A stretch of 64,000 bases of DNA, taken from the sequence record PQ227241.1. One strand, given 5' to 3'. How positions within the stretch are numbered: position 1 is the stretch's first letter; each line of letters starts with the position of its first letter. Shown one piece after another: positions 14,439 to 62,479 of the stretch. Under the pieces are notes generated by a model that was not told the origin of the DNA, did no database searches, and was given only the letters and a program-made list of their open reading frames with translations. Position numbers and translations under genes: made by a program.

Positions 14439-14618
14439 GATCTTAAACTTTTTTTAACTCAGCATAAAGCCTCCCCTAGGGGAGGCGATATGTTCATTTA
14501 TCTATTTCAGCGTTTGGATCATACCAAGGTAATAAACTTAGTAGTGCCGGTTGTTGTTTCTTCATATCCTCTAAGATTGTTGCTTCACTTGCACCTTCTA
14601 ACATAGTGGTGAAAGTAA

Positions 14619-36656: not shown

Positions 36657-36712
36657 TTTTTATTCCTCTAATCACAAAATAAATACCCTCCCGAAGGAGG
36701 GTATTTATATCG

Positions 36713-41958: not shown

Positions 41959-42059
41959 TTTTAAACTCCAACTAATGTATTAAAAAAATATGTCTATATT
42001 GAAAATAAAGCCCTCCCCGAAGGGAGGGTGTATGTCGCCAATAAGTGTTACTAATTTAT

Positions 42060-48238: not shown

Positions 48239-48264
48239 ACACCCTCCCTTAATTGGGAGGGTGT
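48239..48264 (+). terminator. Terminator after nrdA
   Basis: 10-bp stem; its 22-bp core is identical to 49915-49936. Confidence 0.75.
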
Positions 48265-49906: not shown

Positions 49907-49991
49907 ACATAATGACCCTCCCTTAATTGGGAGGGTTTATGCTAACAATTCTATAGCACTCTTATTAACAGTCATCAACGAGAGAGTAGAC

Positions 49992-51875
49992 ATGAATAAA
50001 ATGCTAAACTTCCTAAACCGTACGCTATATAGCGGTACTGAAAAAGTATCTTCAAAAGCTACACCAAGTCTAGAACACTTTAAAACAAATGTTGAACAAG
50101 TAGATAAAAAGATTCTACAACCCTTTAGTACTAAATTTAAAACCATTCTAAAAGAATGTTACAGTAATGAAGAGTGGGTTGAAGAACAATCATTTATTGA
50201 AGAACCTATTGATCTTGGTTCAGCTGCACGCGGTCTTACCGAGCGCGGTATTATGCGTGGTGATTGGGGACGCTTAGCGCATTCCACTATTAAAGAAGCA
50301 GAAGGTATGATGCGTACTTATAGTGGTCGTCTAAATGAAGATATGGAGGCATCTGAAATTAATGAAGTAATTCAAGATATGCCTTATAACTTCACAGCTG
50401 GCTCAGCTAATACTAGCCGTTTAGAAGAAGATGATTCTATTTTTGTTGAAGCAGATACAACTGTAGTTGAACCTCTGTCTAAGCAGACTCTGCCAAAAGT
50501 AGCAGAACTTACTAACCAACTAGTAGAAGTTTATAACCGAATCACTGAAGAATTTACAGAAACTGGTATTGCTAAAGTTGAACAAGTTGAACAGCCAGCA
50601 GTTCTTGTAGCACTTGGTGAGATCATTAGTAGTTTTAATAAACTAATTGATGCTTCATGTGGTGCTCTACCAGTGGAAGAAACTGTTATTGTAGAGGAGG
50701 ATCCGTTACCTGCCATTGTTACTGGTCCAACTACTGAACCCATTGATGGTGAAATTCCACCTGTTGATGCTATTAATAATTCTGCGGCATTAGAAGAGTT
50801 TATTGAAGAAGTACTAAGTACTAATCCAGAATTCATTAAATACCAAAGTATGAATGATAGTAATATTGATTCATATCTAACTGGAGATGACTGGATTATA
50901 CTAAAATTTAAAGATGGTTCTTATTATTTATACAATGCCCAGAGTGCTGGTGAAACAAATATAGAAATCATGAAAGATATGGCCGAAACTGGTAGTGGTC
51001 TTAATGGTTTTATAAATCGAGTTATTCGTGGCGGGTATGTAGAGAAGTCCATCATTAATACTCCCGGTTTTATACAAGTCTCAAATGAAGGTCTTATCGA
51101 CACCATTAAGAGTATCTTCGACTCTGGCCCTGAGATCAATCTTGATAAAAAGAAGAAAGCTATTGCTACACTGAAAAGTACCTATGGTGATGCCAAATGG
51201 GTGGCAGAAGCAAAGCTTAAAACCGGCGAAGTAAAAGTATCGAGTTACGAGACGTTCGCGTCTAATGATCCTAAGACCGCAAAAGCCAATATCACTAATG
51301 CTGTAGCTAAAGCTGATCGTCACAACCAGAAAGTTCTGGATGAGAACAGTAAGATACTAGCCCCCGTGGTTAATCTGTTCAAAGGGAATGATTGGCAAGA
51401 CCCTAAGAAAGTCGCTACTCTTCTGGCTGAATGGAAACCCAATGTAAAGACAAACTTCCAAGAACCCAAATGGCCAGATAATGCTGGTGCTAAGATTAAG
51501 TTGCTTGATGCTACCGGTATTGTGGAAGCAGCTAACGTTATCATTGACGTTCTGTCTAACAACACTAAGACTATTGCGGACACTTGGGTAGCCCAGTATC
51601 CTGACCTATCTGTCAATGGGGATATCTACAAACATAAGCTATCCACTATTAAATATAAAGATGCTCTTGAGGATGTATATCTGCTGGCTAAAAGGGCCGA
51701 TAATGCCATTCTTAACATTCATGCATCGTACGACGACGCTAAGGTTGAATCTACATATCGAGTATTTGCTATCGACATGTTGAAACTAATGCAAGCATCT
51801 GTCAGTAGCTTCCCAAGTGGTTCAACCGTAGAGAACACCAATGAACGCAATACGGTCATTGGTATTGAAGAATAA
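49992..51875 (+). CDS. Head structural protein (gp303-like), modular
   Basis: 627 aa; Glu-rich region with multiple S/A/G-x-E motifs typical of phiKZ head-protease substrates, e.g. VSNE-GLIDTIK. Confidence 0.65.
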   Translation: MNKMLNFLNRTLYSGTEKVSSKATPSLEHFKTNVEQVDKKILQPFSTKFKTILKECYSNEEWVEEQSFIEEPIDLGSAARGLTERGIMRGDWGRLAHSTIKEAEGMMRTYSGRLNEDMEASEINEVIQDMPYNFTAGSANTSRLEEDDSIFVEADTTVVEPLSKQTLPKVAELTNQLVEVYNRITEEFTETGIAKVEQVEQPAVLVALGEIISSFNKLIDASCGALPVEETVIVEEDPLPAIVTGPTTEPIDGEIPPVDAINNSAALEEFIEEVLSTNPEFIKYQSMNDSNIDSYLTGDDWIILKFKDGSYYLYNAQSAGETNIEIMKDMAETGSGLNGFINRVIRGGYVEKSIINTPGFIQVSNEGLIDTIKSIFDSGPEINLDKKKKAIATLKSTYGDAKWVAEAKLKTGEVKVSSYETFASNDPKTAKANITNAVAKADRHNQKVLDENSKILAPVVNLFKGNDWQDPKKVATLLAEWKPNVKTNFQEPKWPDNAGAKIKLLDATGIVEAANVIIDVLSNNTKTIADTWVAQYPDLSVNGDIYKHKLSTIKYKDALEDVYLLAKRADNAILNIHASYDDAKVESTYRVFAIDMLKLMQASVSSFPSGSTVENTNERNTVIGIEE

Positions 51876-51897
51876 CTTACTGAGTATGTAATGATAT

Positions 51898-52040
51898 GTA
51901 GAAATGATCCCTCCCCCTCGTTTCTACATTAGTCATAATAAATCGGAGCCAGTCCCCCTTCCAACTGGCTCCCAGAGAGTAAAACTCTTTGCTGGGCATT
52001 AATGACGATATATCGCCTCCCTTCGGGGAGGCTTTATATT
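51898..52040 (+). ncRNA. Candidate small RNA with two C-rich loops
   Basis: Promoter motif upstream, three hairpins, UUCG terminator, no meaningful ORF. Confidence 0.6.
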
Positions 52041-52095
52041 TTGTTTTTACGTGAGTATGTTAAAATATGTACAAATAACATAGAGTAATTATAAA

Positions 52096-52548
52096 ATGAT
52101 TAAGAATGAACTTTTACCAGGGTTAATCTATGCCCAAAAAGAATTTGATAAAATTGCAGCTAATGTAAAAGACTATGATAAATATAAAAGACGTGAAGCT
52201 GGTAGGGCAAGCGCCGTTTTAAGAAGTCTAGTGAATAATATTGTAAATCAAAATAAACCATCTTCACTTGAACATGAAGGTAAAGTTAGTACTACTAATA
52301 CTAATGAATATTTAGAAGAAGTTAATAATTACTTCTTTAACATTAATAATATTAAATTAATTTCTCCTAAACTCATAAAAGAGAAATTAACAATTGATCT
52401 AATGAATATTTATGTTAAATGGAATATGATTGGAGTGGCTGGCCGAAATGATGTGCCAATTATTGAGCACAGAATTAATGATTGGTGCGAAGTGACCGAT
52501 GTCTACATTAATGGTAATAAGATAACTTCTTTACAATGGCCACGTTGA
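52096..52548 (+). CDS. Hypothetical protein
   Basis: 150-aa ORF. Confidence 0.65.
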   Translation: MIKNELLPGLIYAQKEFDKIAANVKDYDKYKRREAGRASAVLRSLVNNIVNQNKPSSLEHEGKVSTTNTNEYLEEVNNYFFNINNIKLISPKLIKEKLTIDLMNIYVKWNMIGVAGRNDVPIIEHRINDWCEVTDVYINGNKITSLQWPR

Positions 52549-52564
52549 ATTTAAAATAAGTTGT

Positions 52565-52592
52565 AATAAAATACCTAGTATTACATGTTATG
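52565..52592 (+). promoter_or_regulatory. Non-virion-RNAP-type promoter AATAAAATAC-N14-TATG for tRNA-Leu/Pro
   Basis: Identical spacing at 51871, 53887, 55271, 56112, 58285, 58700, about 59155, and at 61949 on the minus strand. Confidence 0.75.
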
Positions 52593-52606
52593 TATTGAAG
52601 CACAAT

Positions 52607-52691
52607 GCCCGAATGGTGAAATTGGTAAACACAGAAGACTTAAAATCTTCCGGCTACGGTCTTGTCGGTTCGAATCCGACTTCGGGCACCA
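52607..52691 (+). tRNA. tRNA-Leu(TAA)
   Basis: Cloverleaf GCCCGAA/TTCGGGC, anticodon loop CTTAAAA, long variable arm, encoded CCA. Confidence 0.97.
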
Positions 52692-52700
52692 ATTTAAATA

Positions 52701-52776
52701 CGGAGTGTAGCGCAGTTGGTAGCGCACCTGCTTTGGGAGCAGGATGTCGGGAGTTCGAGTCTCCCCACTCCGACCA
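52701..52776 (+). tRNA. tRNA-Pro(TGG)
   Basis: CGGAGTG/CACTCCG, loop TTTGGGA, CCA. Confidence 0.97.
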
Positions 52777-52797
52777 TTTTAATAATAGGTAAATAGG

Positions 52798-53091
52798 ATG
52801 GATAATAAATGGATATCATGGGAACATCAAATTATAGGAACAGCTCTTTACGCTATTCTTAGTGACCCTGAATTAACTAATATTCAATTAGCTCAAGGCT
52901 TACACTATCTAACAGAAGCAAAGTCTTCTGTATTACATGTTTGTAATAACCATATTACATTCACTGTAACCTATCCACATGGCACATTTAGAACCAATGT
53001 AATTAGAGAGTGCCCTGCTAGTGATACAAATACATTCAAATGGTCAGGTGTATTAGTCCGTCAAAAAGATGGAACATTCTTACCAGAATAA
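52798..53091 (+). CDS. Hypothetical protein
   Basis: 97-aa ORF between tRNAs. Confidence 0.6.
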   Translation: MDNKWISWEHQIIGTALYAILSDPELTNIQLAQGLHYLTEAKSSVLHVCNNHITFTVTYPHGTFRTNVIRECPASDTNTFKWSGVLVRQKDGTFLPE

Positions 53092-53175: not shown

Positions 53176-53227
53176 TATACTAGCCTCCCACTTGGGGGAG
53201 GTTTTATACTGTCTCATTGAGGAAAAC

Positions 53228-54020: not shown

Positions 54021-54053
54021 TCCGTGATAGCTCAGTCGGTAGAGCAAGTGACT
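54021..54053 (+). pseudogene. 5' half of tRNA-Asn (exact duplicate of 56205-56237)
   Basis: 33 identical nt ending just before the anticodon. Confidence 0.9.
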
Positions 54054-54066
54054 TTTACGATTTCAT

Positions 54067-54153
54067 TGGTAAGTACCCGAGTGGTAGCAGGGAGCGGACT
54101 GTTAATCCGTTGGCGAAAGCCCACCGTAGGTTCGAATCCTACCTTACCAGCCA
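54067..54153 (+). tRNA. Atypical tRNA-Asn(GTT) with long variable arm (Tyr-like body)
   Basis: TGGTAAG/CTTACCA, D-stem CCC/GGG, loop CTGTTAA, 15-nt variable region with GGC-GAAA-GCC, G73, CCA. Confidence 0.9.
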
Positions 54154-56204: not shown

Positions 56205-56280
<76 letters not shown>

Positions 56281-61827: not shown

Positions 61828-61949
61828 AAATAAAGCCCTCCCCGAAGGGAGGGCATTATCAATAGGTGGGATCTCGGCGGCACCTTCATTTGCGGACGGG
61901 AACGCTGAAGGGAGATAGTCCGGGAGATCCCGATTTGGATATTCTTTAC
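61828..61949 (-). ncRNA. Candidate small structured RNA
   Basis: Promoter motif, GC-rich multi-stem core, terminator. Confidence 0.55.
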
Positions 61950-62338: not shown

Positions 62339-62479
62339 TATATTTTCCTCTTAGATGTCAAAAACCCTCCCCGATCAGGGGAGGGTATCTCATTGGTACT
62401 TCTTCAGCAAAACTGAAACTAAGATAAAAGAGCAATCGTAAAGGAACTACATAGAATAGTGTATTTCTTTTACTATTTT

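Follow-up and report, generated by a model that had tools for sequence, protein, structure and literature searches.

Does a short intergenic region of a Phikzvirus encode a small RNA that acts in its own right, and what could such an RNA do? The question is raised by one locus in a stretch of 64,000 nucleotides from sequence record PQ227241.1 (the window), whose source is a Phikzvirus. An earlier sequence-only reading had proposed a riboregulator of roughly 140 nt at this locus, with two C-rich loops that could silence host or early phage mRNAs by occluding their Shine-Dalgarno (SD) sequences. Regulatory RNAs have hardly been explored in jumbo phages, and none of the candidate ncRNAs of phiKZ has been assigned a function in the literature found. 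The analysis described here identifies the locus as an autonomous small-RNA gene of the nucleus-forming jumbo phages of Pseudomonas aeruginosa, orthologous to TU237/T131 of phiKZ. That it is a genuine gene under selection is very likely; what its loops do can be said only with much more reserve.

The small RNA and its phiKZ orthologue

Direct reading of the window bears out the architecture that had been proposed (Table 1). Both hairpins with C-rich loops and the UUCG terminator lie at the positions first given for them, as does the start at G51898 deduced from TTAC-N14-TATG, and the third hairpin is present as well. To this structure RNAfold adds helix P2, which places HP2 and HP3 in a three-way junction. 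The minimum free energy of the fold is -56.2 kcal/mol, compared with -31.7 +/- 3.5 kcal/mol in shuffled sequences (z = -6.97; 0 of 200 shuffles as stable), and the covariance model scores the RNA of the window at 134 bits. Neither loop 1 nor loop 2 contains a G, and the unpaired probability of both is ~1.0, in the window as in all lineages. G-free, C-rich 10-mers occur ~10 times per strand across the 64 kb; at this locus two of them lie 46 nt apart, each exactly filling an apical loop. The rarity of such an arrangement by chance is in itself modest evidence; the conservation of the RNA between genera carries more weight.

Table 1. Position and basis of the features at the small-RNA locus and in its immediate surroundings (window numbering).
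Feature	Position	Strand	Basis or remark
PHIKZ303-like virion/head structural protein gene, upstream	49992..51875	+	ORF list and phiKZ locus comparison
Phage-type promoter, AATAACTTAC + 14-nt spacer + TATG, +1 = G51898	51871..51898	+	direct reading of sequence
Promoter upstream element AATAACTTAC	51871-51880	+	direct reading of sequence
TATG box	51895-51898	+	direct reading of sequence; +1 at G51898
Predicted small RNA, ~141 nt	51898..52038	+	3' end within U-tract approximate (+/- 3 nt)
Hairpin 1 (HP1), 10 bp with one U.G wobble	51898-51907/51918-51927	+	sequence reading, RNAfold
Loop 1, UCCCUCCCCC, in HP1	51908-51917	+	sequence reading
Three-way junction	51932..52006	+	closed by 5-bp helix P2, 51932-51936 with 52002-52006 (RNAfold)
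Hairpin 2 (HP2), perfect 9-bp stem	51945-51953/51964-51972	+	sequence reading, RNAfold
Loop 2, CCCCCUUCCA, in HP2	51954-51963	+	sequence reading
Hairpin 3 (HP3), 8 bp, loop AAA	51973-51980/51984-51991	+	fold, covariation analysis
Intrinsic terminator GCCUCCC-UUCG-GGGAGGC with U-rich tail	52015..52042	+	hairpin 52015-52032; = phiKZ terminator T131
Second, near-duplicate promoter TTAC-N15-TATG, before PHIKZ302 homologue	52047..52069	+	direct reading
PHIKZ302 homologue, downstream gene	52096-52548	+	phiKZ locus comparison
32-aa ORF	51904-52002	+	ORF list
40-aa ORF, antisense	51877-51999	-	ORF list

Judged by its motifs, with TATG at +1 and TTAC upstream, the promoter at 51898 is of the middle/late, phage-polymerase type. 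In phiKZ, the late promoters of the non-virion RNA polymerase (nvRNAP) have the consensus TATG, its G being +1, and middle promoters are marked by AAanTTACc near -24 (PMC4666361; PMC8244752). The upstream element is overlapped by the stop codon of the PHIKZ303-like gene. Phage tRNAs rely on nvRNAP, and the promoter had been said to share its spacing with those of the tRNA genes. This is true of the spacer, since N14 is common (the tRNA-Leu and tRNA-Thr promoters in the window read ATAC-N14-TATG), but among the tRNA genes only tRNA-Asp has the exact TTAC-N14-TATG. This exact motif is not significantly enriched in the 64-kb window (8 matches versus 4.1 expected); it is retained at the homologous RNA in Pawinskivirus and PhiPA3.

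Positions 51876-52095, the intergenic region between the PHIKZ303 and PHIKZ302 homologues and on their strand, correspond to phiKZ 273952-274164 (-), within which the RNA occupies 274009-274149 (-). The phiKZ orthologue is identical at 139 of 143 nt, with 4 differences, and both copies score 133-134 bits with the covariance model; loop 1 of phiKZ reads CCUUCC in place of CCUCC. In phiKZ this locus yields an abundant primary transcript of 141 nt (TU237, terminator T131), which was detected by ONT-cappable-seq, confirmed by Northern blot and ends upstream of PHIKZ302 (Putzeys et al. 2024, microLife 5:uqae002, Fig. 6B; PMC10914365). The same study also describes a full-length read-through transcript, and calls the class '5'UTR-derived, controlled by conditional termination' (PMC10914365). 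Locus, terminator and +1 TATG are the same, and the length predicted here, 141 nt, is also the one measured, the equation of the two RNAs resting on the published text description, locus and length. On the other hand, TU237 was reported as a 5'UTR-derived candidate and from one phage, and the window belongs to another Phikzvirus, in which the upstream half of the promoter is unlike that of phiKZ. Because the +1 context and the terminator are identical to those of phiKZ, a discrete transcript of ~141 nt is to be expected in the phage of the window as well, and the orthologue bears out the proposal of a separate non-coding transcript, about 140 nt long and bounded by these ends. The RNA itself has thus already been published in phiKZ and is not a new transcript; the cross-genus conservation, covariation and loop analysis are new, being absent from Putzeys et al. 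2024.

Conservation across three genera

Besides Phikzvirus, homologues were found in Pawinskivirus and in PhiPA3 (Miltoncavirus); covariance-model scores across the three range from 58 to 134 bits, with E values from 4e-12 to 1.7e-30. The RNA lies directly 3' of the gp303-like gene in all three genera, and its downstream neighbour varies: the PHIKZ302 homologue in the window, tRNA-Leu directly in Pawinskivirus, and gp374/gp373 in PhiPA3. Between genera the RNA is 73-79% identical, while the neighbouring coding DNA cannot be aligned and the adjacent gp303-like protein is only ~35% identical. The distance between core and terminator is also variable, at 8 nt in Phikzvirus, ~35 nt in PhiPA3 and ~55 nt in Pawinskivirus. 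Taken with the covariation and the invariant loop 2 described below, the varying downstream genes and this variable distance are more in keeping with an autonomous RNA gene than with a PHIKZ302 leader.

Beyond these genera, the ~7.5 kb per genome searched beside the gp303 homologues of 201phi2-1, Phabio and Viktualia, phages of other Pseudomonas species, gave only terminator-like matches to the covariance model, which leaves room for a copy elsewhere in these genomes. In 201phi2-1 and Viktualia, a different short unit occupies the same position. A blastn search with the PhiPA3 copy found no further lineages and matched terminator-like sequence only. The exact loop-and-stem pattern had a copy of the PA7 genome as its sole match in IMG/VR, and a relaxed pattern gave one chance, unrelated match in metagenomes, within a high-GC coding region.

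Compensatory changes occur in 8 of the 27 stem pairs (in 5 pairs with a MAFFT-only alignment), a number that a single one of 500 shuffles attains; with no more than about four or five independent lineages, the statistics of covariation are limited, and alignment A4 is also fitted to the model. Pairing is found in 97% of alignment cells, as opposed to 40-47% in slid controls, and the G.U pairs are compatible with the + strand only. In HP1, 5 of 10 pairs have changed on both sides across genera. In HP2, pairing is complete (100%) in every sequence; two of its pairs covary and six of the nine never vary. One pair of HP3 occurs in three types (A-U, G-C and U-A). Helix P2 was judged within Pawinskivirus only, because MAFFT misaligns P2 and the 3' part between genera; there, the P2-like closing helix covaries in three variants, GACCACAG/UUGUGGUC, GAUCACAG/UUGUGAUC and GAACCGCAG/UUGCGGUUC.

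The loops behave differently from the stems. The core of loop 2, CCCUUCCA, is invariant in 10 of 10 sequences from three genera; in the same sequences, 12 of the 20 columns of the HP1 stem and 29 of the 34 columns of the spacer are variable. Within Pawinskivirus, all substitutions fall in stems, junctions or the terminator loop, and none in loops 1 and 2, HP3 or the 55-nt linker. Conservation of loop 1 is less strict, as the CCUUCC of phiKZ shows. UCCC is present in both loops of Phikzvirus, and Pawinskivirus and PhiPA3 have UCACUCCU and AACCCUUCCA instead. CUCC-type or CCUUCC cores recur in unpaired, G-free, C/U-rich segments of each of the three genera. The sequence-only reading had staked its proposal on the conservation of stems and loops in related phages; both are kept, and the stems covary. 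Invariant loops beside covarying stems, in a unit kept while the flanking genes were reshuffled, argue for selection on the RNA itself.

Alternative readings and a possible mode of action

The sequence-only reading had seen no meaningful ORF at the locus. ORFs of 32 and 40 aa do in fact exist in the window, and the GenBank record of HPP-Temi has a short hypothetical protein annotated over the 3' part of the RNA. The start codon of the 32-aa ORF is, however, not conserved, as the ATG at 51904 is ATA in phiKZ, PaZh_1, T2P and 124.01 and absent in Pawinskivirus and PhiPA3. For this reason the small-protein reading was rejected and the RNA is read as non-coding. The ATG also lies just 6 nt from the 5' end, without an SD sequence, and the substitutions compensate RNA pairing and follow no codon pattern, so that the chance of either ORF encoding a small protein seems negligible. 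More weight is due to the idea of a leader or attenuator acting in cis, in which conditional termination at 52015-52032 would set the read-through to the PHIKZ302 homologue and the tRNA genes, with the short RNA as a by-product. Both the 141-nt species and the full-length read-through have been described in phiKZ (Putzeys et al.), a tRNA-Leu gene follows on the same strand within 40 nt to ~1 kb in all three genera, and a contact between loop and terminator is conceivable, with CCUCCCC in loop 1 complementing GGGGAGG in the 3' arm of the terminator. In the other genera, however, this complementarity shrinks to 4-5 nt; no conserved alternative pairing with the 5' arm of the terminator (an anti-terminator) was seen in the three genera, and the range of core-terminator distances is unlike that of a coupled sensor and expression platform. 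Moreover, the first downstream gene is different in each genus, and downstream genes are served by TATG promoters of their own, both at 52047-52069 and before the tRNA genes; the PHIKZ302 homologue need not depend on read-through, because it has such a promoter. The leader model is thus considered unlikely.

A locus without any function of its own, comprising a promoter and a terminator that insulate neighbouring transcription units and a stable structured spacer between them, would be in keeping with the many short promoter-plus-terminator units in jumbo-phage genomes (Putzeys et al. list 17 such candidates in phiKZ alone) and with the different short unit at the same position in 201phi2-1 and Viktualia. 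An inert spacer fits poorly with loops that are invariant beside covarying stems in three genera, and with the retention of the unit amid reshuffled flanking genes; it is given only a slim chance. These loops could also be recognised by a protein. In such a protein-binding or decoy RNA, a host or phage protein would recognise loop 2 on its stem and the C/U-rich segments, for example with the RNA titrating a factor as a mimic of the pyrimidine-rich 16S 3' tail instead of pairing with mRNAs. The fixed pairs of HP2 (six of nine) and the invariant loop 2 across three genera amount to more sequence constraint than structure alone requires, and the RNA is abundant, at least in phiKZ. The 3' tail of 16S rRNA is GAUCACCUCCUUA, and the Pawinskivirus linker after P2, GAUCCCCUCCUUUCA, resembles it. 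This resemblance is short and possibly compositional, Phikzvirus lacks the tail-like linker, no candidate protein has come to light, and no similarity was seen to the protein-binding RNAs in Rfam. Protein binding is, like the leader model, an unlikely reading.

The reading preferred here is that of an autonomous small RNA whose C-rich loops act by base-pairing in trans. Transcription would start at G51898 from the middle/late phage-polymerase promoter TTAC-N14-TATG, and the strong intrinsic terminator would stop most transcripts ~141 nt on. The 5' hairpin and the three-way junction after it display two G-free, C/U-rich apical loops in single-stranded form. These loops may be the working parts, to which the CUCCUU-containing linker would add in Pawinskivirus and PhiPA3, although in PhiPA3 this linker may be paired. 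Base-pairing in trans with G-rich GGA/GGAG segments, for example in the ribosome-binding sites of certain mRNAs of host or phage, could lower the translation or stability of these targets from mid-infection on. Such a mechanism is put forward tentatively, with a substantial but less than even chance of being right. An anti-SD type of occlusion is plausible, and silencing of early phage or host mRNAs would fit the timing of a middle/late promoter; the further suggestion that the RNA is stabilised by Dip is speculation.

Duplex-energy scans of the loops, against the start regions in the window and against the whole window, returned no specific target. Loop 1 pairs with 71 putative translation-initiation regions of the window with a mean of -5.0 kcal/mol, relative to -3.9 kcal/mol for a random coding background, which is about as weak as pairing by the anti-SD of the ribosome itself (about -5 kcal/mol). 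For loop 2 and the same 71 regions the mean is -5.2 kcal/mol versus a background of -5.1 kcal/mol, i.e. there is no enrichment at the start regions of the window over random coding sequence. As these energies are near background, a generic SD occlusion of phage mRNAs would be weak. Across the whole window, the sequences most complementary to the loops are not ribosome-binding sites; they are 3' terminator arms, sequestered in hairpins. UGGAAGGG, the complement of loop 2, has no other occurrence in the window. The 14-mer of the Pawinskivirus/PhiPA3 linker, ACACAACAAGGAGA, gave only random matches in IMG/VR, and its single match in PhiPA3 is the gene itself.

A broader version of the idea is an RNA, specific to P. 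aeruginosa jumbo phages, that reprogrammes translation. Its two to four anti-SD-like CUCC(U)/CCUUCC motifs would sequester either GGA/GGAG-rich sequences (host ribosome-binding sites or regulatory RNAs rich in GGA) or a factor with affinity for the 3' tail of 16S rRNA, tilting translation towards the phage from mid-infection. This is a speculative and rather improbable proposal. One of the motifs in Pawinskivirus directly follows a helix, as does the 3' tail of 16S rRNA. Action of the loops on ribosome-binding sites, or on such a tail-binding factor, would constitute an RNA-level route to translational takeover, complementing the protein route already described for phiKZ. In any case, an abundant RNA with defined ends, kept in three P. 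aeruginosa-infecting genera, its stems covarying and one C-rich loop invariant, ranks among the more solidly based candidates for initial functional work, for which the loop sequences provide a precise, mutable handle.

Comparison with known RNAs

In an Rfam search at a permissive threshold (51000-53000, E up to 10), only tRNAs were significant and RsaE/RoxS gave no match. There is no ARAGORN or Rfam tRNA call at 51898-52040, and a tRNA or tmRNA identity was rejected. The hallmarks of a riboswitch or attenuator leader, exclusive pairings at a fixed distance and a common downstream gene, are likewise missing. The only Rfam family with even a weak match besides tRNAs is that of the alphaproteobacterial ar14/CcsR-type 'cuckoo' RNAs, which have CCUCCUCCC loops. 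The ar14 match (RF02344; 51891-51976) evidently stems from hairpins whose C-rich loops resemble an anti-SD; at 19.9 bits (E = 0.56) it is far below the gathering threshold of 58.8, and membership of this family was rejected.

The RsaE/RoxS RNAs of Firmicutes pair with ribosome-binding sites through C-rich UCCC motifs. Like these, the RNA of the window carries C-rich, G-free, unpaired motifs on hairpins, followed by an intrinsic terminator, and UCCC is present in both of its loops. There is, however, no homology in sequence or structure, host clade and polymerase are different, and UCCC is not conserved in Pawinskivirus and PhiPA3; the comparison is an analogy only. Species 1 and 2 RNAs of phage T4 are small, stable, structured non-tRNA RNAs in a tRNA gene cluster, with a function long unknown. 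They share with the present RNA the location of a structured small RNA beside phage tRNA genes; in contrast to the T4 RNAs, which are processed out of a tRNA precursor, it has its own promoter and terminator. Finally, sRNA005 of 201phi2-1, equivalent to the phiKZ sRNA upstream of gp182, is a 5'UTR-type small RNA kept across jumbo-phage genera (PMC11512511). Although this is another RNA at another locus, it provides a precedent for a small RNA shared between genera of jumbo phages.

Transcript, fold and promoter

The transcript of this small RNA has been described before, in the type phage phiKZ. Its orthologue there is one of 17 '5'UTR-derived ncRNA candidates' of unknown function, described as 'controlled by conditional termination'; abundance and length were confirmed by Northern blot, on which a read-through species is also visible (Putzeys et al. 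2024, PMC10914365). Counted from the TATG G and ending 6-7 nt beyond the terminator stem, the RNA measures 141 nt in phiKZ and in the window alike, and the two differ at 4 of 143 positions. The sequence-only reading, which had proposed a discrete RNA of about 140 nt, therefore rediscovered an experimentally established transcript, so the novelty of the feature is low. No function for it was found in later literature (a Grad-seq paper, the 201phi2-1 transcriptome, an antisense-oligomer screen and a 2025 review). What is new is its conservation in three genera, a three-way-junction fold backed by covariation, the invariance of loop 2, and the case for an autonomous RNA gene as opposed to a PHIKZ302 leader.

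Direct reading of 51400-52500 found all previously claimed elements in place. The minimum free energy of 51898-52046 (RNAfold) is -56.2 kcal/mol, compared with -31.7 +/- 3.5 in dinucleotide shuffles (z = -6.97), and none of 200 shuffles folded as stably. Loops 1 and 2 contain no G, and each has an unpaired probability of ~1.0.

Elements of the small RNA, and examples of hairpins with a common stem (window positions)
Feature	Position	Strand	Details	Basis
Promoter	51871-51880; 51895-51898	+	AATAACTTAC, 14-nt spacer, TATG	sequence reading
Hairpin 1	51898-51907 / 51918-51927		10 bp, one U.G pair; loop 1 UCCCUCCCCC	
Closing helix	51932-51936 / 52002-52006		5 bp; forms a three-way junction with hairpins 2 and 3	RNAfold
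Hairpin 2	51945-51953 / 51964-51972		perfect 9 bp; loop 2 CCCCCUUCCA	
Hairpin 3	51973-51991			sequence reading
Terminator	52015-52032		GCCUCCC-UUCG-GGGAGGC and U-rich tail	sequence reading; simple terminator scan
Common-stem hairpins, examples	14461-14490, 36681-36710, 42006-42035, 48246-48261, 49915-49936, 53184-53198, 61831-61860, 62361-62390			

Late promoters of phiKZ carry TATG, with G as +1, and middle promoters AAanTTACc near -24 (PMC4666361). For the same class, Wicke et al. give a TACT motif ~22 nt upstream with an A-rich stretch before it, which they located on the strand of the small RNA for PHIKZ301, 305 and 306 (PMC8244752). The window's AATAACTTACT...TATG matches this class; the phiKZ counterpart is AAAACTACC...TATG. 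The suggestion that the spacing is that of the tRNA promoters is broadly right, as N14 recurs at tRNA-Asp, tRNA-Leu and tRNA-Thr, but only tRNA-Asp has the exact TTAC, the other two being preceded by ATAC-N14-TATG. The window has 8 matches to the bare TTAC-N14-TATG pattern where 4.1 are expected, which is no significant enrichment. The non-virion polymerase is required for phage tRNAs; by inference, the small RNA would be a middle/late product of this enzyme.

Distribution and conservation

The small RNA is flanked by ORFs of 627 aa (49992-51875) and 150 aa (52096-52548), with a cluster of seven tRNA genes downstream. Several Phikzvirus genomes, PA02 and OMKO1 among them, match the region at 100% identity; phiKZ and PA7 do so at 94-97%. 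In phiKZ, the locus is the intergenic gap between PHIKZ303, a structural head protein, and PHIKZ302. In the Pawinskivirus-type phages PS119XW, HPP-Temi, phiHQ, PA1C and BRkr, blastn matches the small RNA at 73-75% identity and leaves the flanking coding DNA unmatched. A covariance model trained on nine variants recovered copies in PhiPA3 (Miltoncavirus; 58.4 bits, E = 4e-12) and phiLBG22. In every homologue, the RNA begins just past the stop codon of a gp303-like virion protein and TTAC-N14-TATG is retained. Between PhiPA3 and Pawinskivirus, this protein is only ~35% identical, the small RNA 78-79%.

The covariance model had no match beside the gp303 homologues of 201phi2-1, Phabio and Viktualia (syntenic 7.5 kb of each genome), whose hosts are other Pseudomonas species; blastn, IMG/VR and metagenome pattern scans yielded no additional lineage. 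All known carriers infect P. aeruginosa, a distribution that fits a host-specific role and, equally, plain phylogenetic distance. Directly after their gp303 homologues, 201phi2-1 (L017:5795-5885) and Viktualia (L016:4950-5035) share a different, conserved short unit, in which a TATG promoter-like site is followed by a terminator hairpin, AACCCACAGC...GUUGUGGGUUUUAU; with no C-rich loops and no covariance-model match, it is a positional analogue. In HPP-Temi, GenBank places a 35-aa hypothetical protein across the 3' part of the small RNA (L013:1623-1730), probably a spurious gene call.

In the stretch 51866-51884, homology to phiKZ begins only at 51884, within the promoter; upstream, the gp303 3' end and promoter half of phiKZ differ from the window's version, which is common to PA7-type phages, Pawinskivirus and PhiPA3. 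With the PHIKZ304 homologue showing 100% identity to phiKZ and only 57% to OMKO1, the region is mosaic. Further downstream, 54021-54066 resembles the first 46 nt of phiKZ-type tRNA-Asn, with the same start as the complete tRNA-Asn at 56205, and directly after it, at 54067-54153, comes an 87-nt tRNA (anticodon GTT) whose variable arm is long (ARAGORN; Rfam tRNA 55.8 bits). phiKZ has an annotated plain 78-nt tRNA-Asn at this position; the tRNA gene at 54021-54153 may have been replaced or rearranged.

Covariation, proposed as a check on the stems, bore them out. Pairing holds for 97.7% of stem cells in the MAFFT alignment, compared with 40-47% for slid partners, and 5 of 27 pairs have changes on both sides. 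The model-fitted alignment that includes PhiPA3, which is biased towards the model, gives 97.1% and 8 of 27; of 500 shuffles, one matched the eight covarying pairs and none the covariation score. Only ~4-5 of the lineages behind these figures are independent. The closing helix covaries among three Pawinskivirus variants. Variable columns make up 12 of 20 in the hairpin-1 stem and 29 of 34 in the spacer; loop 2 (CCCUUCCA) is invariant in 10/10 sequences. Within Pawinskivirus, substitutions are confined to stems, junctions and the terminator loop; no change occurs in loop 1, loop 2, hairpin 3 or a 55-nt linker. Loop 1 is worded differently in the window, phiKZ (UCCUUCCCCC), Pawinskivirus (UCACUCCU) and PhiPA3 (CCUACUCCU), and is always G-free and pyrimidine-rich. 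Covarying stems beside fixed loops would be expected where another RNA or a protein recognises the loop sequence. The small RNA is very probably real and under selection.

The segment UCUCCUUGUUGUGUUGAUG is common to Pawinskivirus and PhiPA3 and absent from Phikzvirus. Pawinskivirus also has CCCCUCCUUUCA immediately 3' of the closing helix, resembling the 3' tail of 16S rRNA, GAUCACCUCCUUA. The Pawinskivirus linker (L002:1628-1685, L003:1627-1684, L013:1629-1686), which does not differ among the three variants and is predicted to be mostly single-stranded, has two CUCCUU modules, apparently the one PhiPA3 module duplicated in tandem. The first is placed after a helix like the anti-Shine-Dalgarno (SD) tail after helix 45 of 16S rRNA.

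Possible modes of action

The best-supported proposal, though a tentative one, is that the C/U-rich loops base-pair in trans with G-rich RNA sites. A leader acting in cis is rather unlikely. In its favour, there are read-through transcripts, tRNA-Leu is found downstream in every case, and loop 1 is complementary to the terminator 3' arm, although in other genera this complementarity is down to 4-5 nt. However, the downstream gene changes, from the PHIKZ302 homologue in Phikzvirus to tRNA-Leu (~40 nt past the terminator) in Pawinskivirus and two unrelated small genes in PhiPA3. Core and terminator are 8, ~35 or ~55 nt apart across genera, unlike in a coupled expression platform, and no conserved anti-terminator pairing was seen. 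Moreover, a near-duplicate promoter, TTAC-N15-TATG (52047-52069), sharing GAGTATGT...ATATGTA with that of the small RNA, lies between terminator and PHIKZ302 homologue, and the tRNAs have TATG promoters of their own. All four points speak against a leader dedicated to PHIKZ302. A protein-binding or decoy RNA is about as improbable as a cis leader, an insulating unit without function of its own is less probable still, and an encoded small protein is extremely improbable.

Pairing in trans had been envisaged as SD occlusion. The unpaired segments, in both composition and conservation, are consistent with this idea; duplex-energy tests gave no positive evidence for it. For the 71 putative genes of the window, whose start regions have ordinary short SDs (GAGG, AGGA, GGAG), a 16S-type anti-SD averages -4.9 kcal/mol at start regions against -1.9 in random coding background (20-nt windows). 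The corresponding values in 48-nt windows are -5.0 and -3.9 for loop 1, and -5.2 and -5.1 for loop 2, which has no start-region preference in this set. Loop 1 would thus be able to contact an SD roughly as well as the ribosome does, which makes global occlusion implausible unless the small RNA is extremely abundant. The strongest loop complements within the window are GGGGAGGG arms of the phage's own terminators, locked in hairpins, and the loop 2 complement UGGAAGGG has no other occurrence there; specific targets rich in G may still lie in the host or in other parts of the phage genome. A CCCUCCC ... GGGAGGG stem, often capped by a UUCG-type loop, recurs in many hairpins of the window, several of which resemble terminators; these hairpins make up most of the C-rich and G-rich runs of this AT-rich genome and are the best loop 1 complements.

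No Rfam family matches the small RNA, the sole hint being a score of 19.9 bits for the alphaproteobacterial RNA ar14, which has C-rich loops and a gathering score of 58.8. The comparison with RsaE/RoxS is for this reason an analogy, not a family assignment.
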